The translations under genes and the position numbers were made by a program. Source: Podarcis liolepis (taxonomy: Eukaryota). Taken from it: a stretch of 64,000 bases of DNA. This document shows, piece after piece, positions 4,396 to 62,282 of the stretch; positions within the stretch are counted from its first letter, which is position 1, and each line of letters starts with the position of its first letter. A model generated the notes under the pieces. The model ran no database searches. It saw only the letters and a list, made by a program, of their open reading frames with translations, and was not told the origin of the DNA. The stretch lies in NCBI GenBank assembly GCA_965112155.1, contig OZ218105.1; one strand, 5' to 3'.

Positions 4396-4520
4396 ATATT
4401 TCCAAAGGAAATAAACAAAGTTAACTCCCATAATAGTGTTAGGTCTACAAGCAAAAACAAACAAACCAACAAATGCTAGAGGTACACAAAGCTTTGCTGC
4501 TTGTAGAATTATAAACAGCA

Positions 4521-5012
4521 CCATCATGCTGGGTTGCCCCAGCGACTCTGAGCGGCTTCCAACAAAATATTAAAAACACAATAGAACGTCAACCATTAAA
4601 AACTTCCCTGAACAGGGCTGCCCTCAGATGTCTTCTAAAAGTCAAATAGTTGTTTATCTGTTTGACATCTGGTGGGAGGGCATTCCACAGGGCGGGTGCC
4701 ACTACGAAGAAGGCCCTCTACCTGGTTCCCTGTAACCTTGCTTCTCTCGGTGAGGGAACCACCAGAAGGCCCTCAGAGTGTCCGGGCTGAACGACGGGGG
4801 TAGAGACGCTCCTTCAGGTATACTGGGCCAAGGCCATTTAGGGCTTTAAAGATCAGCACCAACACTTTGAACCACTACCAAGAAGGCCCTTTGCCTGGCT
4901 CCCTGTAGCTTCACGTCTCACAGTGAGGGAATTTCTAGAAAGCCCTTGGAACTGGACCTCAGCGTCCAGACTGGACAATGTAGGAGAAGACACTCCTTCA
5001 GGTACACAGGGC
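4521..5012 (-). mobile_element. L2-clade LINE 3' fragments (two partial copies in tandem)
   Basis: Reverse complement homologous to 37883-38212 and 59225-59428, which encode the RAFSVVAPxLWNxLP motif. Confidence 0.8.
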
Positions 5013-9899: not shown

Positions 9900-12567
9900 G
9901 CTGCACCTGACATGATAAAAAAGGGCTGTGGCTGGACCCTCCCAGATGGTCATAAAACTGGATTAGATTTCTATGTCGATCGCATTTGCTTCCATGCCCA
10001 AGCTGAGGTAATCAGCAAACAGCATAATTTCGAAAATAGTACTGCCATCATAGTTAAAAGAGCTGACAAAGAAGCAGCAGTCATCATTGTGAACATTTCA
10101 GACATGAGGCTGCAAGGCAACTCCACCATGACATTTTACAGTACCCAATTATCAGATCCCACCGAAGAATACCAGAAAGATCTACACAATCTGATGAAGG
10201 AATTTCCTACCAAAGTGCAAATCAAAAGCCATACATCTGAGGAGCCTCAACTAAACATTTTCTATTTACTACCCAAACTACAGAAACCATGGCACTTTAG
10301 GTGCCCCATAAGTTTAGGCTTCCGGTACCATCACAGATGGGGCATTTGGATATACGGACTCTGTTTGAAGGCCATATGCCACCAGTACTCGTGCTTGGTT
10401 CTGAATACAACCAACTTTCTGAGGAAATGACAATCCGGTGACAAGCTTCCAGAACACAGTACCCTAGACCAGTGTTTCCCAACCGGTGTTCCGCGGCACA
10501 CTAGTGTGCCGTGAGACACCGGCTGGTGTGCCGTGGGAGGGAGGCGGGCGAGTCGGGCGGCGAGAGGCGGCGGCGGCGAGGATCCGCGTCGAGCCGGGGG
10601 CGGCTCCGCGGTGCTGGTGCCGAGCGGCGGGGCAGCGCGCGCAAAAGGGAGGAGCGCGAGACAGCGGAGGAGGAGGAGGCCGGCATGTCCGGGCAGCAGC
10701 AGCAACAGCAGCAGCAGCAACTCCCGGCGACGGCTCCTCCTCCGCCCGCTATCGCCGCCACCACCACAACAGCCGCCGCCGCCTCAGCTGCCGCCGTCCC
10801 TCAGTCCCTCGCTCTGCTGCCTCCTCCCACCCCGGCAAGGGGAAGGGAAAAAACTTTCACTTTTGTGCGTCCCTCCCGGCGTGACGCTGCGCGCTGACGT
10901 CACGGGGCGGGGCTTTAATGGTGGTGTGCCGCGAGATTTTTTCCCGGTAAACAGGTGTGCCGTTGCCCAAAAACGTTTGGGAAACACTGCCCTAGACTAC
11001 ACCAGTATCTCCACAAGGATGGGATATAAGCCATCAGTAATATCATCCTAGATGGAGTTCCAGCCACCAAACTTTGCCACGTAATACTCACTTTCATTTC
11101 AGATTTAGGGAGAACATTTATCTTCAGAACAATTGCTCTGCCATGGGCACTCTTGGATGGACCCAAAGTATGCCAGCATCTCATGGCTGATTTAGAATAC
11201 CTCATTCTCATTGTTTGTCTCCTAAAGCCTTTCCTCTCCTTGAAACACACTATACCTATGTCTATGTCTATCATCTATCTATCTATATCTATCTATCTAT
11301 CTATCATCTATCTATCCCGCCCATCTGGCTGGGTTTCCCCAGCTACTCTAGGAAGCTAATATCATATATAAAAACACAACACAACAAAACATCAAACATT
11401 TTAAGAAAACAAAATATCATTTACAAGCAACAAACAAACAAATCAATCAATAGAAATCAACAGCAACAACAGACAGTGTACAGTTATGCCCAAATTAAAA
11501 TAACCACCAACTCCAACTAAACATTTAACCAACACCAATCCGACAATAATAATAATAATAATAATGGAACCATTTAAAACATTTTAGCCAGTTTTCAGCT
11601 GCCACATTTATGACATCTTTATCATCTGGACTTATCAACAAAGACAGTTTGAGCGGTTCTACCCAGATTTCAATAAGCTTCAACCTGCAATCAACTTGAG
11701 CCTTGATCTATTCAGACAGCAGGTTCACTTTCTTGAAACTACTGTAAAATTATACGTACAATGGACATTTACTGGTAAGTATCACTATACATAGGAAACC
11801 AAATGTCTGCTACATCTATTTACATGATTCCGAAGTGCATCCAGAACATGCACTACAAAATCTATCGTCTACACCCAATCTCTATGATATAATTGCATCA
11901 ACTCAGATTCATCACACTCACAAGATAGAAAAAAGTTACATCAGGCATTAATCAAACCACATCACCTCCCTCATCCATTGATGTGGGAGATCAACCAAGC
12001 CAGATTGGTACTACTACAGGACAAACCTTGAAGAGAAAATGACAGAAATCCACTTGTCATTATTTATAGTTCCCAGCTGAAACCACTCAAACATAATCAG
12101 TGATCTATAGGCTATCATCAGTCAATAGACACCTCAATTTCACAGGTCTTAGGTGGTAGGTCTGTACTTACAGAAAGCCCCAGACAACTATCCCAAAGCA
12201 ACCACTCATCAGCAACTACAGGCCACATAACAGAGATCTGGGACCAGACCCTGCAGTAAACCCAGATGCCAAATCTGTCCCTCTTTCTACTCTGGCAACA
12301 CTATTACACTATCTAATTGCGTATTGTGCCAGTCACACAATCAGTTGTTCATTCAGCTGTTCATCTTCCAGAGTGATATATGTTATCTTCCAGCAGTAGC
12401 TTTCAGCATTCTGCATAGGACAAATAGCCCAGTCTCTACACAAAAGAACCAATTAATGTGATCCAGGAAAGCTTATGAAATAATAAATATACTGTAATAA
12501 ATATAGTTCCACAACACTCTTTCTTGTATCTGCTGCAACAAGCTACCATGGCTACCACTCTGTAAAC
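9900..12567 (+). mobile_element. Decayed Penelope-like retroelement (RT + GIY-YIG endonuclease + terminal repeat), interrupted by later insertions
   Basis: IIVKRADK and FYLLPKLQKP motifs; frameshifted YTSI, AMGT, YDIFIIW and VHFLETTV RT motifs; CSSSRVIYVI...IGQ GIY-YIG remnant near 12360-12430; GAAAGCTTATG...GGCTACCACTCTG terminal-repeat remnant at 12467-12563. Confidence 0.8.
10470..10989. mobile_element. Young non-autonomous hAT element with CpG-rich cargo, inserted in the Penelope RT region
   Basis: TIR CAGTGTTTCCCAA...TTGGGAAACACTG; perfect 8-bp TSD CCCTAGAC (10462-10469/10990-10997). Confidence 0.92.
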
Positions 12568-36007: not shown

Positions 36008-36758
36008 TTGCATGATGAGGCCCCAGGCCCCACAGTTCCCTCAGAAATAAGCACACAGACATGAATATGTTGGGTTAATGGGATAAATTAGGCCCCAACG
36101 TTATTGCTTACAGATGTGAGCAGTCTGGCTTAGGCAATTGGATGAAGCAAGACTATGTTCTGAATCCTGCCCATCTGCAGGGGTCCCATAAGGGTCAACC
36201 ACCAATAGGGGGAGCCCTATGGTATACATCAATTGAGTACCCCCAAGGTTACCGATGGGGTCGTGGCATGGCCCTAGCCCATGCCCAGGCTTCGGGCAGG
36301 AACCACACCCCTGGATCCTTTAACAGGATACCCTTAACGTGGAGAGCCAGGCCAGAGGCAACAACTGCCCCTCCCATGACAAGGCTTACCTAATGCCTAA
36401 CCTTACAAAGTTGTGACAATTGCTACTAGGTAGGCGAAAACCAAATGGCTGGTGCCAGTTTGCCAAGTAGAAAAATTCCTACCTGGCCTCAACAACCAGA
36501 CGACCGACATTAGTCATAGCAAGGCCATAGTCAAGCACACAAGAAAAGAGGGTGGGTGGGCTGGGAGATCTGAGGGAGGAGATGAATGGAGGCCACCCTC
36601 TCCAGCCACGCTGCGGTTTAAATACCACATGGCCACGCCCCCGGCTAACCTGATTGGTCAGCCGGGGGACGTGACATGGCAGCTGGGAGTCCTAATGATG
36701 TGGGCAGCATCCTTGCCCACAGCCGGGTCACTGGGAGGTCTCGGGTTGCCACCCGCAA
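36008..36758 (-). mobile_element. TSD-less LTR-like structured element, copy 2 (possibly DIRS/Ngaro-derived)
   Basis: TTGCG...TGCAA ends on the - strand; shares ordered conserved blocks with 45747-46473 and 59429-61226; CCAAT, GC box and TATTTAAA near its 5' end. Confidence 0.7.
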
Positions 36759-37882
36759 TGCTGCACCCCCCCAAAAGGGAGCCATTTTCTAAATACATTT
36801 TCTTTCAAAATTTGCATTTTTAGACATACATTATATTTATTTGGGGGTGAGTACTGCTTCAGAACATCCAGGAATGATCGGAATGATCTCATCAGGGAAG
36901 CATGTCTGGTGCCACCACAACTTTCAGACACCAAGAAACTCTTGGTTACCCATGCTTCTCCTCCCCAGCCCTCTGCAGTTCTGGGGCTTTCCCCAACTTC
37001 CCAGAATCAATTTAGGGGCAGGCATGGTAGGAAAGGAGAGGAAGCAAAGCCTTGTTGTGTTAGTGGGAATTGGCACTAGCACAACTGTGGCACTAACTTA
37101 GTCATGTTCATCAGTTTCAATGGATCTCCCCTTCAGTAAAAGTTCACTGACTACCACCCAATAATTATAACATCATAGTTTGTTTCGAAGGGCAGAAAGC
37201 AACCCATCACCAAAGGAATGTAAGTGCAGCTGAAGATGAACTAAAAGCACCCTGGCTTGTTGCGTTGTTTCCTGCTGTTTAATGCAGCAATTAAATTTAT
37301 GATGAGCTTTTACAAGTTCATAAAAAGTCCCAAATACAAATGCAGAAGAAGCCACTTCTCTAATAAGAGGGCACCTCCTCTAAGGATCATGCTTTTAACT
37401 GTTGAAGTATGAAACTTGATGTGTTGCCCATAACAACAACAAAGAAGAGTGCTAAAGGGGGATAACTGAATAGACTGGAGAGCCAGGGAGAGTATTCTTT
37501 GTAGTGAAGGCAAAAGGGAAGTGCCAAGGTTCTCTAAAACTTGTTTGTGAAAACAGCATGTGTAGACTAAACCATACACATTTATTAGTCAAATTGCTTC
37601 AGCAACATCCTCACTACAATATAACCTTGGTTGAGTCATTTGGTACCCATGAGCACCAAATGCATGCAGAGGGTTCTGAGAGCTTTCCCTCCTAAATGCC
37701 AGCATAGGTGCCACCTCACCCCACCTGATGATGCTCATAGGTGCATAGGAAGCTGCTTGATCTTCAGTCAGACCATTGGTCTGTCTTGTTCAGTACAGTC
37801 TACACCGAGGACCAGAAGTTTCTCATCCATGAGGCTAATTAGCCCCTTGAGGCCTCCCCACTTGGCCCACAAGGCCATTTTG

Positions 37883-38212
37883 CCCGGAAACTGAGGTCTG
37901 CCCCGGAAACTGACGTCCAGCACTGAGGGCCTTCTGGTGGTTCCCTTGCTACGAGAAGCCAAGTTACAGGGAACCAGGCAGAGGGCCTTCTCGGTAGTGG
38001 CACCCGCCCTGTGGAACGCCTTCCCACCAGATGTCAAAGAGAAAAATAACTACCAAACTTTTAGAAGACATCTGAAGGCAGCCCTGTTTAGGGAAGCGTT
38101 TAATGTTTAATAGGTTATGGTATTTTAGTGTTTTGTTGGAAGCCACCCAGAGGGGCTGGGGAAACCCAGCCAGATGGGCAGGGTATGTATAAATAAATAA
38201 ATAAATAAATAA
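37883..38212 (+). mobile_element. L2-clade LINE 3' end
   Basis: Encodes EGLLVVPLLREAKLQGTRQRAFSVVAPALWNAFP; GC-rich 3' end followed by (AAAT)n tail. Confidence 0.85.
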
Positions 38213-40403: not shown

Positions 40404-40487
40404 TTTGTAATTCTATACCACTTTTTATTTTTAATAAATATCTCAAAGCCGTTTGTCTGTTCCTTACTTGTCTTTGTTTGCTCCCAG

Positions 40488-40978
40488 TTTTAGTCGTGCT
40501 GTTTGCCGCAATGAAGCGGCAGAGGAAGAAAGAGCCCTTGATCATTTCCAAGGATGATGTCCGAGACAATATTGTGACCTATAATGATGAAGGAGGTGGC
40601 GAAGAAGATACTCAAGCTTTTGACATTGGTACGCTAAGAAATCCCGAAGCCAGAGAAGAAAGCAAAATGAGGAGAGATGTGATGCCAGAAACTATCTTCC
40701 AGATAAGGAGAACTGTGCCGCTGTGGGAGAACATTGATGTCCAAGATTTTATCCATCGAAGGCTAAAGGAAAATGATTTGGATCCAACGGCACCTCCTTA
40801 CGATTCTTTAGCAACATATGCGTATGAAGGGAATGATTCTATAGCAAATTCGCTTAGCTCTTTGGAATCACTCACTACAGATGGTGGCAACCAAGATTAC
40901 GATTATCTCAGTGACTGGGGACCTCGGTTTAAAAAATTGGCAGATATGTATGGCGGAGATGAGAGTGACCAAGACTGA
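40488..40978 (+). CDS. CDH9: Last coding exon: end of the TM helix and cytoplasmic tail with p120- and beta-catenin-binding regions, TGA stop
   Basis: cccag acceptor; [14 protein letters not shown] and [14 protein letters not shown] motifs; [36 protein letters not shown] matches recalled CDH9 rather than CDH6/7/10. Confidence 0.95.
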
Positions 40979-45015: not shown

Positions 45016-45746
45016 TAGGGAGTTAGGGACATGCACACTGTCTGAACCCAAGAATGCCAGGTGAGCCTGTTCTGTTTCCCATCCTTTGTGCATTGATAGG
45101 AAGGTTTCACATGGACTGAACATGCTTAGAAGCTGTCTCATGATCAGAAACCTTGATAACTTGCTTGGGAGACTTTTTTTAGACCTTTGCACTAAGAATG
45201 TGGAAGTCAGGGATGGAGTGGATTAGGAGGTTGGGGTCAGGAGTATGGATGCCAGAAAATTCCTACAGAAACAGAAATGGTTGGTCTTTACTTATTTGTC
45301 CTTCATCCATAACAAAAATCAGTTCGGTGAGTACAATGGATGTCTGTCGATGCATACATGACTATGCTTCTCCCTCCCATTTGCACTGTGTTTCCTTTCC
45401 ATTGAAATGCATAGGTTGTCATAAAGTAATGACAACGTAACTTACAAACCTGAGTTATGGAAGTTATGCAATTTATCCACAGTGGACAGAAAGACAAGTA
45501 ACATAGTTTTTGGCAGAAGAACTGCAGCAGAATGGAAACAGTGCTGCGGGTGATGAATACAAGACAGAACAAAATAATAATAATCAATGTCTTCTGATAT
45601 CCCTAGTCAGGACACAACCTTTCCCCCCTGTCTGTTCTAGCTCAATGCTGTAATAGGACTAATATCCACTACGTAGGCTATGACACAGTTTATAGGTTGT
45701 GTGTATGAAACATTCCTTTCTCCCATACTTATGCCTTCAGCATGGG

Positions 45747-46473
45747 TTGTGAGAAAGACTCTCCTCCCTGCAAGAGAGGGGAGTGGTTGTGGCCGGGAGC
45801 CGGACTCCACCTCAAGCAGGGGGCGTTTGCCCCCTGCCTCCCACTCACCTGGCTGGCGCCCACGCCCTCGGCCAGGCACCGTTTGCGAGTCACCCACCCT
45901 CCACTCCCTTAGAGCAGGGTTCCAGTTTTCTTTTGGCCTTGCTATGGACCTTAGGTTGGTCGCCCTGGTTGTTCGGGGGGCCTGGTAGGAAATTTTCCAT
46001 TTGGCATTAGGCTTTTTGGTTTTTTCGCCTACCTCATAGCAATCGTCACAACTTTCGTGGTATTGGTGGGTAGGTTAGGCATTGGAATAATGTGTTGTGG
46101 TGTCGAAGGGCTAGGTGTGGCCATCGCCTGCGCCTTCAATTTTTGGGTATTCCGTTAAAGGAATCCAGCGGTCGTGTATTCTGTCCGATGCCTGCGTGGC
46201 GGGAGGCCATGGCACGACCCTCGGTGACATCAGGGGAGAGCTTGTAGTTGGATTAGCATCAACAGGCTCCACCTACTGGTGAATAACCCCCCCTTTTTTT
46301 TGACTCACCCCTCTCTGAGTGGGTGGAGTCAGCTGACGTAATCCAATGCCTAAGCCAATACCTTTTCACTTGCTGTAATCAATAAAGTTGTGGCCTTTTC
46401 TTGCCCATTAACCTTATATCACGTGTCCTTGTGTTTCATTCCACTGCGCGGGGTACGGGTCCTCGAACCACAA
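45747..46473 (+). mobile_element. TSD-less LTR-like structured element, copy 1 (possibly DIRS/Ngaro-derived)
   Basis: TTGTG...CACAA ends; AATAAAGTTGTGGCC at 46381; conserved blocks shared with two other copies. Confidence 0.7.
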
Positions 46474-48128
46474 TGCTGATGTTCAGACAAGTGTATTTTT
46501 TCTTCTCCACTGCCTCCATATATACTAAGCAGATCTCTTAATTCCTTCTATCTGGAAGATCTGGAACCACACCCTGGAGAAAAATCAGCTGGAAATTGGA
46601 AAGCATGAGGTGACTTTATAGCAAATTAGACTATTTGTCCATCTAACCCTTCAGGTTGTTTTTCAGCAGGTGAAGCTGACTCCTGGCCCATGAAAGGAAT
46701 GCTATGGGAAAATGTTCAAAATGGAATGTCCCTTTTTGTGGAGTTGAGTTGAGGAGAAACGGCATGATTTTTGTATGCCTGGCCATTGGGAAAAAGTTGG
46801 CCACACTACCCATAATTGAAATAAATATAGCTAATGGAAGCCATTGTCTTTTCTGTACTGGGCTGTATGTCAAACCTCCCACCCCTCTCATTTCCATTTT
46901 CAAGCAATAAGCAAATGTCAGCAATCCAAGAACGTCTGCAGCAATCCAATCTAATACACTTTTAAAGACTATTAAGCAATTAAAGATTTGTCACTAATGG
47001 CTTTTAAAACGAAGGGGAAGCAAAACAGGGAAACAAAAGAAGCTTGATACTCTAAAAATAGGTTACATGGTGTATTCCTTCAAATAAAACATCTTGTTAA
47101 CTTACACAGAAACATTTTGCTTTCATGCTTTCAATGATTTGGTGCTAATGAGGGATGCATTTCCTTAAAAAAAGAGAGATGATAATGTATATATTAAAAT
47201 ATGCACTGGGTTTATGAGATTATTAACCATTCACTAACTTTGCAAGAATAGGATTTCACACATAATGGAATTAGTGGTGCTGTCCTTTTCATTCAGTATA
47301 TTTGCTTGGTGGTGGCAAATGGATTAAAGTTGGCCATCTACAATTTATTATTATTATCATCATCATCACCATTATTATTATTATTATTATTATTAACATT
47401 TATATCTGACTTTTCTTCCAAGGAGCTCAAGGTGGTGTTGATGGTTCTTCTCCTCACTGCATCCTTACAACACTGTGTGGTGAGTTAGGCTATGAGAATG
47501 ACTGACTCACAGCCACCCAGTGAACTTCATGGCTAAGGCTGGATTTGAACCCTGGTCTACCAACTCCATTCATTCAGTCTAACTTAGCTCCAGTAGTGGT
47601 GGTTCTTGATCCATCTCTGACCACACAGAATGACTAGAGCAGCATTTTCAAACTGCTGATAACATCTGGACCACACTTCTAACCGAATTAAAATAATCAT
47701 CCTCACCTTCTCTCCTTTGGTTTGTTTTGGAACACCCCTAGGCAGGATCCCACAGGGTGAGGGCATATTTGGGTACATCTCTGCTTAAGGCAGCAGTACC
47801 CAGGTTCACCTCAGGCTTATGCAAGAGTAAGCCAGATGCTCCCATTGGGTCAAAGATGGTGCCACTGCTTCTCTCTGGAGGCCTAGCCTGGTTCAGGGGA
47901 TTCCTCCAAGCTGAAGCCACTTTATCCCCATCCACTCTGAAGTGAGGTCTTCCCTCTGCCAGCAGATCCTTCGCTGGCATGTGTAAGAATCCCATCAGTC
48001 TACACAGAGGTCGCATAGATGCTTATGCCACCTTGTTTGTTCACAGGCGCTTTGGGCTCATTTATTTATTTGACTTGCTGATTACAGGTAAGATCAATTT
48101 AGTGGGCAGGAATGGGGAATGTCTAGAT

Positions 48129-53126: not shown

Positions 53127-54201
53127 CAGACCCTCCAAGGGTACCTATTTTCCAGGGACAGTCCTGGATTTACAGAAGCTGTCCTGGTTTCTTATTTGAT
53201 CCCAGAATGTCCCACTTTTCCTTAGGATATCCCTGATCTCATCAGAGAAATGTCTGAACATATGGTAAGGTAAAGGTAGAGGGACCCCTGACCATTAGGT
53301 CCAATCGTGACCGCCTCTGGGGTTGCGGCGCTCATCTCGCTTTATTGGCCGAGAGAGCCGGCGTTTGTCCGCAGACAGCTTCTGGGTCATGTGGCCAGCA
53401 TGACTAAGCCGCTTCTGGAAAACCAGAGCAGCTGGAGCGGTACCTATTTATCTACTTGCACTTTGTGCTTTTGAACTGCTAGGTTAGCAGGAGCTAAGAC
53501 CGAGCAACGGGGTTCGAACTGCTGACCTTCTGATCAGCAGGTCCTGGGCTCTGTGGTTTAACCCACAGTGCCACCTGCGTAGGACGTCCCTATTTCCATC
53601 AGAGAAATGTTGGCGTGCATGGAGTTAAGGGACACCCAAGCCAACTATACAACCTTTAGAAGAATTCTGAAGGCAGCCCTGTACAGTGGTGCCCCGCAAG
53701 ACGAATGCCTCGCAAGACGGAAAACTCGCTAGACGAAAGAGTTTTCCGTTTTGGAGGTGCTTCGCAAAACGAATTTCCTATGGGCTTGCTTCGCAAGATG
53801 ACAATGTCTTGCGAGTTCCTGCTGGTTTTTTCCCCTTCCCCCCTTTTTTCTAAGCCGCTTATCAGCTGATCCGATCAGCAGATAAGCCGCTCAAAGCTGC
53901 TAATAGCGCTAATCCGCTAATCCTTCAATGGGCTTGCTTCGCAAGACGAAAAAACCGCTAGACGAAGAGAATCACAGAACGGATTCTTTTCGTCTTGCGA
54001 GGCACCACTGTATAGGGAATTTTTTTAATGTTTAATGTTTTATTATGTTTTTATATATGTATCTGGAAGCCTCCCAGAGTGGCTGGGGCAACCTCTTCAG
54101 ATGGGTGGGTTATAAGTAAACATTATTATTATTATTATTATTACTATTATTGAATAGGACATCACATCCCTATTTTCATCGGAGAAATGTTGGAGGATAT
54201 A
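53127..54201. mobile_element. DNA-transposon-like repeat (family of 290-598) containing a Sauria SINE (about 53264-53580) and an L2 3' end (about 53643-54151)
   Basis: CAGACCCTCCAAG start, repeated CCCTATTTTCATCGGAGAAATGTTGG motif, homology to 290-598. Confidence 0.7.
53684..54010. mobile_element. Young Tc1/mariner-type MITE inserted in an L2 tail
   Basis: TA|CAGTGGTGCCCCGCAAGACGAA...TTCGTCTTGCGAGGCACCACTG|TA; splits GCAGCCCTGTA/TAGGGAA. Confidence 0.9.
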
Positions 54202-54345: not shown

Positions 54346-55066
54346 CAGTGATGGCGAACCTTTTAGAGATCAAGTGTCCAGACTGCAACCCAAAACCCAC
54401 TTATTTATCTCAAAGTGCCAACATGGCAATTGAACCTGTATATCTCTCCCCCCCCCCCATGTTTTTCACGTTTCTTCTTTATGACTGATGTTGTAATAAA
54501 TAATCCTTTGCATTACATTCTTCATTAAATTATTTTTCCATTGATATGTAATTTCATGGTATAACTAAGTGCTTTTTTTCTAAAATTGTTTAGGGGTACT
54601 CTCATTTTGACTCAAGAAAATCACCACGGGGGTGTGTGGAGCGCGTTCTGTGAGTGTGGCATGCTGCCCGTGGGGGCATGGCACCTGGTGCATGGGAGGG
54701 TGTGCAGCATATGCCGGGGGGGGGGCGTCGCGATGGCACCCTACCGGAATAGTGGTGCCAGGGACGGTCTGCTCCTTCCGCACCCCCATTCCTCCGCCAG
54801 TGACTACTTGGACCTTAACACTTCAAACCCGGAAATGAGTGTTCCAGTTTTGGAACTTTTTCCGGAACCTGAATGTGCTCTGTTCTGAGTATAACTTCCA
54901 CTTTGAGTGCCACACTTCAGTTTTCCTAGTGAGGGAAGGCGGGTCAGGTGGCAAGCGAGCCGCTGCCACAACAGCAACCACCCCCTCCTCCAGCTCTGGC
55001 AGCCCCGGCGCTGAGTGAGGGAAGGCTGAGCCAGGGCAGCAAGCGTGCAGGCAAGGGATGTTGCCG

Positions 55067-55112
<46 letters not shown>

Positions 55113-55756
55113 CAGCCTGCTCCCGCTTGTAGGCCACTTTTGATTGATGGGGTCTGTGTGGAGAGGGTACCAACGTTCAGATTTTGGGGCATTGAATTAC
55201 AAGAGGATTTGTCCTGGAGTGTCAACACAATGGGGCTTGTGAAGAAGGCGCAGCAGAGACTGTACTTTTTGAGAATACTAAGGAAAAACCATCTTCCGCA
55301 GAAACTGCTGCTTGCCTTCTATCACTGTGCCATTGAGAGCGTGCTCACTTATGGCTTATGTGTGTGGTACGGAAGCTGTACTACTCAAGACAGGATGGGG
55401 TTGTGCAGGGTTGTTAAGGCAGCAGAGAGCATTGTTGGCTGCCCACTCTCCACCTTAGAGCAGATTTATGCCACAAGGTGCCATAGAAAGGCACTGGACA
55501 TAGTAAAAGATCCATCGCATCCTGGTCACTGTCTCTTCGAGCTCTTGCCGTCGGGACGGAGATGCAGGACGATGAAGACAAGAACGAGCCGTCTTAAGAA
55601 CAGCTTCTTCTCCAGAGCGATCTCGGCCCTGAATGGGAAGCCCGGACTTTGAAAGTCATCTAATCTCCCTTGCTGTATTATACTGTATTGTTCAATTTGT
55701 GTTTTTATGGAGCAGTCAAGTAATTTCATTGTCCCCGAAGGGGGCAATGACAATAA

Positions 55757-59428: not shown

Positions 59429-61226
59429 TTGCGTGTTGAGTCCCACAAGCCACGCACCAAAAAATTCACACTTCACACGTGAATTTTGTTTAAGGTTTTT
59501 GGCATAATTTTGGCCACAACTTTATTTAAATACAAAAAATGTGAGTGGTTGCTTAGGCATTGGTTATGACTATCTGTCCTTGCCCTCAAGGACAGAGCCA
59601 GTGGCGTAGCGTGGGGGGTGCCAGGGGTGCCAGCCGCACCGGGCGCAACATTTTGGGGGGCGCGTTTGGCCGGCCCCCCTCAAGGAAGCGGGAACCTCTC
59701 CAAGGCACAGCGTGCCGTCGGTAGAGGAAAAAAGCCGAGCAGCAGCAGCAGCAAAGTCGGGAGGAGGAGGAGGTGGAGCGAGCCTGCTAATTCCTTGCAA
59801 AGTCGGGAGGAGGAGGAGGTGGAGCGAGCCTGCTAAGAATTCCTCGCAGCTGGCCATCCAACCTCCAGCGAAGGAGGGCCCCGCTCCACCTTCCGAGGGA
59901 GCCTGCTAGGACCCCCGGCTCCCTGCAGGTGGCTCACAACCCCTGCTAGCCCGGCCGGGGCTCGGGGAGGATGGGAGCCGCCTGCTGGGCTGGCACAGCT
60001 GCGTGTGAAGGCGCGGAGGGAGGCGCTCCCAGGGCTGCCGGCGGCCTTTCCCCGCACGCGAAGGAGCAAGGGCGGCGGCGAGGCTGCGCAACAGCCGCTG
60101 CGTGAGAACGAGCCCTTGCCCAGCCCGGGGGACGATCCGGAGGCCCTCTCCGAGCGCGTCGCGTGTAGCCAGCCTGCCAGCCTGCCTGCCAGGGTGGAGC
60201 AAAGCGGCGGAGTGGGGAGAGGTTGCCCTTCTTCGCACGCAACCCCCCCCCCGCGTCACGCCTTAAATCCACCCTCCCACAAACTAGGAGCGAGCAGCTG
60301 AGAGGGAACAGCTGAGAGCCACGAGCAGCTTTTTCTGAAAATGCCCTTTAAAAAAAAAAAATCCTAAAATTTATAAACCGCTTGACAGCTACAAAAGCGG
60401 TTTGCCAAGAGAATAAAACTGCCAGGAAGCAGTGGCGTAGCGTGGGGGGTGCAGGGGGGCCGGCCGCACCGGGTGCAACATCTGGGGGTTAGGGTTAGGG
60501 GGCGCAAATCCACGGGTTAGGGGGCGCAAATCCACAGGTTAGGGGGCGCAAATTACTTGCCTTGCCCCGGGTGCTGACAAGCCACGCTACGCCACTGGAC
60601 AGAGCTGGCCCTTCCGGACACCAACGGAAGCCAGCGTGGGAAACAAGTATTGGGTGAGAAATCTGAAACTGGGCAACAGTCCCTCACTTCTCACCCTCAT
60701 ATTCCGGTGGGGCTTGCACGGCCGCAGGTCCGACTCCGGGGACAAGGACAAATTGTATGGCAAGCCCCTGGATTCCTTTAACGGAATTCCCTTTCCGCAT
60801 CATTTGGAGGGGTAGGCACTTACCCCTCCAAGCACCAATTTAACCAATGCCTAACCGCCAACCTTACAAGTTGTGACGATTTGCTACGTAGTAGGCAAAA
60901 ACCAAATGGCACCAGCCAATCAGCCAGATGGCAAAATTCCTACTAGGCCCCCACACCAAGGCAGACGACCCCATGACAGGCAATAGCAAGGTCAAGCGAG
61001 CAAAACAAAAAACCACCCTATAAAAGGGCAGGAGGGCGGGTGATCCGATGCAAAACGGCCAAGAGAGCGTCCAACGTCTGGCCCCTATATTTAAGGACTC
61101 TGACCCCTCCCCCAAATTGACCACAATTCAAAACTCCCCAGCAACCCAATTTAACCACTTAAAGGCTTGGGTTCCTCACCAAATTTGCCTAGTCACTGCA
61201 GGGTGGCCTGTTCTTCCCAACCGCAA
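59429..61226 (-). mobile_element. TSD-less LTR-like structured element, copy 3 (791 bp after removing the nested hAT element and one TSD copy)
   Basis: TTGCG...CGCAA ends; AATAAAGTTGTGGCC on the - strand near 59511-59525; conserved blocks shared with the other two copies. Confidence 0.7.
59599..60597. mobile_element. Young composite hAT element with two left ends
   Basis: CAGTGGCGTAGCGTGG at 59599 and 60430, CCACGCTACGCCACTG at the right end; perfect TSD GACAGAGC. Confidence 0.9.
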
Positions 61227-62079
61227 CACGTGCTCTCTGTTATGGAGAACACGCTCTACCAGACTTTTAGACGACATCTGAAGGCAGCCCTGTTTAGGGA
61301 AGCTTTTAATGTTTGATGCATTACTTTATTTTAATATTGTGTTGGAAGCCGCCCAGAGTGGCTGTGGAAACCCAGCCAGATGGGCGGGGTATAAATAATA
61401 AATTATTATTATTATTATTATTATTCTGTGCCTCTTGGGCTTCCAGCACTTGCTACAGAGCATTGTAATCACCAGTCTTATAATTTAAGAGGCTGTTCTC
61501 CTGCACACCTGCCATGATAGGGAGCAGACAGTACAATTAACCACAAAAGCCTACATGTTTGATTTCCAGCTGCCTTTTCTTGAAGTCACACGGGCAATGC
61601 AGTGCCGTAGGATTGTGGCGTGTGGTGAGACTCTGCTAGTACTCGAATGGGTAAGAGTGAAGTTCACAAAATGCTAAATGAAAAGACAGTACTATCAGAA
61701 GGGGGTCTTTGTATCGAAACTTACTGCTTCCAAGTTTCCTGCATATTCAAGAGATGCTTAGTCTGTGCTTCAAAGCCTCCTGCGGTTTCTTTTAAGCTCC
61801 TCCCGCAAGCCTTGTGAAGCCACCGGGCTTCATCATTGAAAAACAGACAGCTGGTGAAACCATACTAAATGATAATCCGGGTGAAAGCTACCTATGAGAA
61901 ACTTTGCTGGATTTCCAGACTTTTCCCACAAGTGGATAAGGGAGGGCGAATGTCACCCTCATAAAGGTACATACACTTAGCCTGAAAAGGGACACAGACA
62001 AAGCTGCAGGCAGTAGGTGCCTCATCCATAGTTTTCCAGTGAAAACGTTCGATTTCAGTAGTACATTCGCCACCTCATG

Positions 62080-62282
62080 ATAATAATAAAAATAATTTTA
62101 TCATTTGCACTCCTTCCATCTGGCTGGGTTGCCCCAGCCACTCTGGGCAGCTTCCAACACATAAAAACATAATCAAACACCAAACATTAAAAGCATCTCA
62201 TTGCAGGAGTACCTTCAAATGCCTTCTAAAAGTTGTATAGCTGTATATCTCCTTGACATCTGATGTGAGGGCATTCCACAGC
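62080..62282 (-). mobile_element. L2-clade LINE 3' end
   Basis: Reverse complement of the L2 tail family. Confidence 0.8.

Follow-up and report, generated by a model that had tools for sequence, protein, structure and literature searches.

Three diverged copies of a repeat (c1, c2 and c3) in the 64-kb window, by which we mean the whole stretch of 64,000 nucleotides of Podarcis liolepis DNA that was analysed, are probably the terminal-repeat units of a pol-II-transcribed tyrosine-recombinase (DIRS order) retroelement whose leader fold was kept by selection. Among such retroelements a split-direct-repeat type (Ngaro/PAT-like, A1-[ORFs]-B1A2B2) is the likeliest, in which case c1, c2 and c3 would be 'solo AB' units belonging to three subfamilies whose identity has fallen to about 66%. 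A promoter, a non-coding leader of about 500 nt, an AAUAAA signal with a GU-rich element and a tail of about 65 nt would be present in each unit. The sense leader RNA is predicted to fold into stem A with a U-rich-loop hairpin, followed by stem B, which encloses stem C, a GUUAAA hairpin and variable arms, and this fold would have been maintained by selection while the lineages were active.

Copies and anatomy of the repeat

Searches with blastn (short words) and nhmmer found exactly three copies of the repeat in the 64-kb window, and an nhmmer profile built from c1–c3 detected no fourth copy within it. The first, c1, is a whole unit of 718 bp on the + strand (45754–46471), and read and contig depth was restricted to this span; its ends are ambiguous by two nucleotides (AA), and 45756–46473 is an equally good placement. 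The second, c2, is a decayed copy on the − strand (approximately 36008–36786) whose ends were placed from homology alone, while c3, also on the − strand (59429–61255), measures 820 bp after subtraction of a nested insert. This insert is a hAT-type insertion of 999 bp (59599–60597, − strand) that lies in the variable loop of c3, is foreign to the family and carries 16-bp terminal inverted repeats (CAGTGGCGTAGCGTGG) and an 8-bp duplication (GCTCTGTC). It is non-autonomous and has an additional internal copy of its end repeat at 60430–60445, so that it consists of a 168-bp mini-element beside about 830 bp of GC-rich sequence, the latter with 22-bp and 46-bp tandem repeats.

Overall, the three copies are about 66% identical (blastn: c1 versus c2, 65.9% over 574 columns; c1 versus c3, 66% over 306 columns plus a 75-column 3′ piece). 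The original prediction had described them as barely aligning, which holds for the upstream 170 nt or so, where c1, c2 and c3 are essentially unalignable, but not for the part from leader to tail, where they are about 66% alike over approximately 550 nt and where ordered blocks are common to all from CCTTGCTAT on. Near-identical c1 copies are present in several related species, and public runs of several related organisms contained about half of the sampled words, from which it follows that the c1 subfamily is young and widespread. The decayed c2, and c3 with its nested insert, are members of other subfamilies.

All units follow the same order, with a variable upstream or promoter part, a folded leader of about 500 nt, the AATAAA hexamer, a GU-rich element and a tail of about 65–90 nt. 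In c1, the upstream U3-like part (45754–45900, + strand) is GC-rich and barely alignable to c2 or c3. TATA boxes were present in c2 and c3 and none was seen in c1; the promoter-like motifs of c2 are CCAAT at 36657–36653 and TATTTAAA at 36624–36617, and c3 has a TATA-like TTAAATATA at 61094–61086 (all on the − strand). Downstream of the leader, c1 carries AATAAA at 46381–46386 and a GU-rich element at 46422–46436, 35–50 nt beyond the hexamer. The same arrangement was read in c3 and, with the hexamer AATAAC, in c2, and 46381–46436 (+ strand) is a putative poly(A) site. No conserved or notable ORF was found inside the unit, which, together with the empty sites of c1 and c3 described below, bears out its earlier description as a non-coding mobile element.

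Pfam scans of the 13 longest ORFs of the window detected no RT, integrase or recombinase. Roughly 4.8 kb upstream of c1 and on the same strand, an ORF at 40478–40978 (+ strand) that strongly matched the cadherin cytoplasmic tail (PF01049, E = 3e-31) probably represents the final coding exon of a cadherin gene. Another ORF at 54948–55652 (+ strand) matched PF09004 (ALKBH8_N, E = 1e-21), a domain that often matches the C-terminal part of LINE ORF2, and this ORF is presumably a LINE fragment.

A nested fold conserved among the copies

A consensus fold was calculated with RNAalifold on an anchor-guided alignment of the three copies. Every motif on which the original prediction had been built was present at its coordinates in the window sequence, and the consensus recovered all of the stems that it had proposed plus two more. 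The nested domain occupies 45939–46394 of c1 (+ strand) in both the minimum-free-energy (MFE) structure of c1 and the three-copy consensus. Its 5′ sub-domain (45939–46042, + strand) is closed by stem A, in which TTGCTAT (45939–45945) pairs with ATAGCAA (46036–46042) in both structures, and contains in the consensus an inner stem (45983–45989/46028–46034) with two pairs changed on both sides and a further helix (45997–46005/46011–46019) across a U-rich internal loop.

The remainder of the domain is enclosed by stem B, whose 5′ arm GTCACAACTTT (46045–46055, + strand) pairs with the 3′ arm AAAGTTGTGGC (46384–46394, + strand), the latter overlapping the last three bases of AATAAA. In the consensus fold stem B is 46045–46058/46382–46394, and a U.G wobble within it was kept in all three copies. 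Stem C is formed by GGTTAGGCATTGGA (46073–46086, + strand) and TCCAATGCCTAAGCC (46342–46356, + strand), as 46073–46086/46342–46355 in the consensus, with a bulged G in the 3′ arm that was likewise kept in three of three copies. Inside stem C lie a covarying hairpin (46105–46114/46128–46137, + strand), which reads GAAGG/CCUUC in c1, GGAGG/CUCC in c2 and GAGGGG/CCCCUC in c3, and the GUUAAA-loop hairpin (46146–46153/46160–46166, + strand), the loop of which is invariant. The core of the latter, ATTCC-GTTAAA-GGAAT, is at 46149–46164 in c1, and in c2 its stem is one pair shorter on both sides. The longer arms that had been noted for the third stem of c3 (GGTTAGGCATTGGTTA and TAACCAATGCCTAAGC) were present, and so were the mismatches reported for the poly(A)-signal stem of c2, a copy with the hexamer AATAAC and mismatches in both stem B and stem C.

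Folded alone, c1 reached an MFE of −183.4 kcal/mol (z = −3.5 relative to dinucleotide shuffles) with a structure that includes the hairpin as well as stems A, B and C, and c3 without its hAT insert retained stem C, the hairpin and the inner stem. The complementarity might nevertheless have arisen by chance among three unrelated or merely decaying repeats, a reading to which the small number of sequences (three) and the behaviour of c2, which did not adopt the family structure when folded alone (z = −2.1), lend some weight. To this we oppose the score of the consensus, −99.6 as compared with −49.9±5.6 in 200 column shuffles that preserved conservation and gap classes (z = −8.8). The comparison of stems with loops, set beforehand as a test that could refute the prediction, gave the better conservation to the stems, with 134 of 232 paired columns (58%) and 72 of 343 unpaired columns (21%) identical in the three copies. 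In addition, 91.5% of the cells in paired columns were able to pair, as opposed to 35–49% after sliding the partners by one to three columns. Chance is thus so improbable an explanation that, at the level the data allow, we regard it as refuted.

Compared with the sequence between its stems, the nested fold is the better conserved, and it shows compensatory changes, the covariation resting on three sequences from which the consensus structure was itself derived. In the inner stem, GGUAGG/CCUACC in c1 and c2 is replaced by AGUAGG/CCUACU in c3, and one position outside this helix an A-U pair is exchanged for U-A; elsewhere GAAGG/CCUUC alternates with GGAGG/CUCC, and AUUCC/GGAAU with AUCC/GGAU. 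Within the 5′ domain 94.9% of cells were paired and four pairs were changed on both sides, and its covariation score was matched in 6 of 500 shuffles. Of the variant positions listed for related copies between 45930 and 46400, the 26 with the best support all lay outside stems A, B and C and outside the hairpin core. In public runs, some expressed relatives showed joints from 46043, 46053 or 46054 to 46373, the sides of which were only 21–24 nt long, and from these relatives everything between the arms of stem B is apparently missing; in other relatives the spacers were replaced and the blocks retained. Both the replacement of spacers and the loss of the segment fit a modular RNA that retains its closing stem.

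The complementary blocks could instead be inverted repeats at the level of DNA, such as the terminal inverted repeats of nested DNA transposons or palindromes bound by a recombinase, with no selected RNA or ssDNA fold. Stems B and C are indeed visible as inverted repeats in the DNA, and variants that apparently lack the segment between the stem-B arms are what an inserted module would produce. However, the fold bears the signature of the sense strand, that is, of RNA: the sense alignment reached −99.6 kcal/mol as compared with −74.6 kcal/mol for the antisense, the sense strand folded better in each of the three single copies, and G.U cells outnumbered A.C cells by 45 to 4 in the three-copy fold. 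The conserved U.G of stem B and the bulged G of stem C would be unexpected for transposon ends, the arms lack flanking duplications, and short-range hairpins covary too, making this reading very improbable. Conservation, compensatory pairs and the sense-strand signature, in three copies only, agree with the original proposal of a nested fold of about 450 nt under selection.

The prediction had also recognized no described structure, and Rfam 15, which includes ribozymes, ENE and retroviral cis elements, gave the same answer. No family scored above the gathering threshold in the whole window, and at E≤10 only noise was returned on c1, with no match on the 131-nt 5′ domain. By eye, no hammerhead core was seen.

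Stranded raw RNA reads of a public run over 45910–46320 had their first mate mainly on the − strand, which implies sense RNA provided that the library is of the usual dUTP type; the bias started only at about 45910. In raw RNA run X23, approximately 280 reads of the opposite mate orientation were confined to the 54 nt from 46343 to 46396, the stretch from the 3′ arm of stem C through the 3′ arm of stem B. As these reads were flanked by uniform unrelated sequence, a single highly expressed transcript elsewhere apparently carries a short fragment of the family in antisense.

Integration footprint and element class

Public sequencing runs (reads and contigs) were mapped onto 45500–46700, where depth was limited to 45754–46471/83, the span of the repeat. 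An empty site for c1 was provided by a 248-nt contig from a related organism, in which 45641–45753 was fused directly to 46472–46606. The two junctions of c1 share at most 2 nt (AA), with no duplication of 4–6 bp. This contig came from a presumed RNA run, and the flanks are perhaps transcribed at a low level in the relative; the empty site may reflect precise excision instead of ancestral absence.

For c3, the empty site was given by paralogues, since this copy interrupts a SINE-like repeat whose other copies (38200–37901, − strand; 4501–4786, + strand; 62095–62281, + strand) read ..GGTAG|TTRTTTTTCTC.. across the insertion point, which in the uninterrupted repeat at 37901–38200 falls between 38050 and 38049. 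The occupied site reads GGTAG|AGCGTG...CACGCAA|TTGTTT, with no target-site duplication (TSD). The SINE-like family (..CCCGCCCATCTGGCTGGGTTTCCCCAGCC..), which by eye we take to be typical of a squamate genome, is abundant and has AAT/ATTT microsatellites upstream; it also occurs at 54121–54000 (− strand) and 11310–11400 (+ strand) and forms the flanks of c3 (61405–61256 and 59428–59284).

Several other interpretations of the ends were tried and rejected. Overlaps between nhmmer and blastn matches had hinted at a decayed duplication of 12–18 bp at c3, with the segment approximately 60–75% alike and the flanks 80–90%; homologous sequence starts c1 and c2 at their 5′ end too, and the segment is therefore part of the element and not a duplication. 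To the eye, the flanks of c1 and c2 had some likeness to the host repeat of c3, but an nhmmer profile of that repeat missed them, and the notion of a shared or specific target was abandoned. A Helitron-type insertion (A|T target, TC...CTRR ends) fits neither c1 nor c3, and a putative tRNA primer-binding site (TGGCGCCC), present only in the upstream part of c1 and not conserved, was treated as chance.

The unit ends are AG...CAA in both c1 and c3. A joint of the end of the unit to its start (46471 to 45754) occurred in one raw RNA read and in the contigs of two runs, each from a different study, and in run X15 the contig with the joint contributed 145 of the approximately 157 depth over the upstream part; the runs with junction contigs are RNA by guess only. 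The junction of c1 reads ..CAC-AAA-GAC... That of c3 would read ..CGC-AAA-GCG.., flanked by perfect 7-bp inverted repeats and thus like a small recombinase core site, given that the termini of c3 are 7-bp inverted repeats (GCGTGTT...AACACGC). Inspection of c1 for inverted repeats found none at its termini, so that among the copies they are a feature of c3 only. In the published DIRS model, the junction trinucleotide recombines with a like target trinucleotide and no TSD is formed (PMC3266345, PMC7192593). Both insertions match this model: c1, with the junction AAA and the target AAT (..GAG-AAT-GCT..), shows AAA at its left end and AAT at its right end, and c3, for which the junction would be AAA and the target AGT (..GGT-AGT-TGT.., by paralogue), shows AGA and AAT, respectively.

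Solo AB repeats have been described for Ngaro elements (PMC8547959), and in split-direct-repeat elements with the structure A1-[ORFs]-B1A2B2 the end of one unit is joined to the start of the next at B1A2. The joint found here is compatible with the B1A2 of a full-length element, with a tandem or with a circle. Taken together, the absence of a TSD, the joining of end to start and the terminal-repeat anatomy indicate that the unit is most likely a 'solo AB' unit rather than a stand-alone element of no known class. As no RT or YR gene is present in the window, the assignment to a YR family is inferred from a single junction and the integration footprints. Within the 64-kb window only bare units and no A1-[ORFs]-B1A2B2 copy were found, and exact-pattern scans of viral and metagenome collections for the conserved blocks gave only chance matches, none accompanied by a second block.

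A U3-R-U5-like layout, with a promoter, a long leader, AATAAA and a tail of about 65–90 nt, would also be expected if the copies were solo LTRs whose parent, an integrase-type LTR retrotransposon or an endogenous retrovirus, had a structured R of unusual length, and structured R regions are well known in retroviruses. This interpretation is disfavoured, and we consider it distinctly improbable, because the ends are AG...CAA rather than TG...CA, because there is no TSD at two independent empty sites (at most 2 nt in c1), and because contigs carry an end-to-start junction, which LTR-internal-LTR proviruses do not have. A less unlikely explanation, though still an unlikely one, takes the bare unit of about 720–820 bp as the mobile entity, a non-autonomous parasite of tyrosine-recombinase elements that is integrated in trans, moves as a transcript from its own promoter or as an excised DNA circle, forms head-to-tail circles or tandems and has a fold recognized by helper proteins. 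That all three copies in the window are bare units would agree with this, as would the head-to-tail junction in nearly all of the U3-containing depth of run X15, the occurrence of near-identical c1 copies in several related species when an empty site nevertheless exists, and the conservation of the fold across subfamilies. On the other hand, recombination of A1 with A2 yields solo units equally well (PMC8547959), the joint is explicable by the B1A2 junction of full-length elements, circles were not demonstrated here, and a 64-kb sample is too small to show that full-length copies are absent. Slightly more doubtful is the version in which a gene-less, structured and possibly circular RNA cassette acts as a hyper-parasite of DIRS/Ngaro elements and inherits its fold rather than its sequence; here the nested fold would draw the two ends of the unit together, and the unit would then be copied, closed head to tail and integrated by the tyrosine recombinase of a helper.

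Relation to known systems and possible role of the fold

Under the preferred reading, the units are terminal repeats of the DIRS order in the form of solo AB units, an element type that is already known. Compared by repeat unit, they resemble the split direct repeats of the Ngaro/PAT type (Goodwin & Poulter; Hackl et al. 2021, PMC8547959) in having a directly oriented terminal-repeat unit, no TSD and isolated units that are scattered, and in a joint of the unit end to its start that may correspond to B1A2; they differ from them in that no linked RT/YR genes lie in the window. DIRS1-like elements have inverted terminal repeats, an internal complementary region and a trinucleotide circle junction (PMC3266345, PMC7192593). 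As in DIRS1, the junction AAA appears to have recombined with a similar target (AAT or AGT) with no duplication, and on the other strand these trinucleotides (TTT, ATT and ACT) correspond to the published 'NTT' ends. Unlike in DIRS1, the promoter and the poly(A) signal are in one orientation, and there are no long inverted terminal repeats, those of c3 being only 7 bp long and c1 having none.

Structured leaders are known in general from the terminal repeats of retroelements. In retroviruses, the R or leader region contains the TAR and poly(A) hairpins of HIV-1 and, in HTLV-1, the Rex-responsive element (RxRE) in R. The present unit shares with these a long folded non-coding region that extends from the transcription start to the poly(A) site, with the AAUAAA partly in a helix, and differs in its integration mechanism, in a much longer-range fold with closing arms 330 nt apart, in the lack of sequence or Rfam similarity and in the weak occlusion predicted for the hexamer. 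ENE-type elements, with U-rich internal loops, occur in viral, lncRNA and transposon transcripts. The hairpin at 45983–46034 is similar to them in that its two helices are separated by an internal loop with U-rich sequence on each strand, and its lower helix shows compensatory changes, although, unlike ENE, the 131-nt stretch matches no Rfam family even at E≤10. Searches of the literature and of Rfam yielded no published description of a conserved nested RNA fold of about 450 nt in Ngaro/PAT or DIRS repeats, and this is the part of the finding that we could not find described and that is apparently new.

To our knowledge, hardly anything is known of the cis-acting RNA signals used by tyrosine-recombinase retrotransposons, and how their RNA is recognized and how transcription gets past the internal poly(A) signal are, as far as we know, open questions. 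For the DIRS order, the primer for cDNA synthesis is still unknown (PMC7192593). The fold is presumably a cis-acting RNA signal; our best guess is that the Gag/RT of the element itself would recognize it in packaging or in cDNA synthesis. Three of its features, the GUUAAA loop, the bulged G and the U-rich internal loop, resemble contact points for protein or RNA.

A gating of 3′-end processing by the fold, which had been suggested originally, found little favour. The mean pairing probability of the AAUAAA was 0.50 in c1, 0.53 in c3 and 0.22 in c2, as compared with a molecule-wide mean of 0.61, and the predicted ensembles pair just the last three bases of the hexamer. Because the values for c1 and c3 are below the mean of the molecule, a modulation of poly(A)-signal use is rated as a weak candidate for a secondary role. 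A transcript of an A1-[ORFs]-B1A2B2 element would have to read through the poly(A) signal of B1 once, and it is at this step that the fold may modulate.

For the annotation of genomes, solo-LTR-like units without a TSD should not be classed as integrase LTRs. The family itself offers a comparative system, in which subfamilies that are only about 66% alike have the same helices, wobble, bulge and loop sequence, and in which one subfamily or more is so young that a relative lacks the insertion at the orthologous site. The conserved helices indicate which parts of the RNA should be the first to be mutated.
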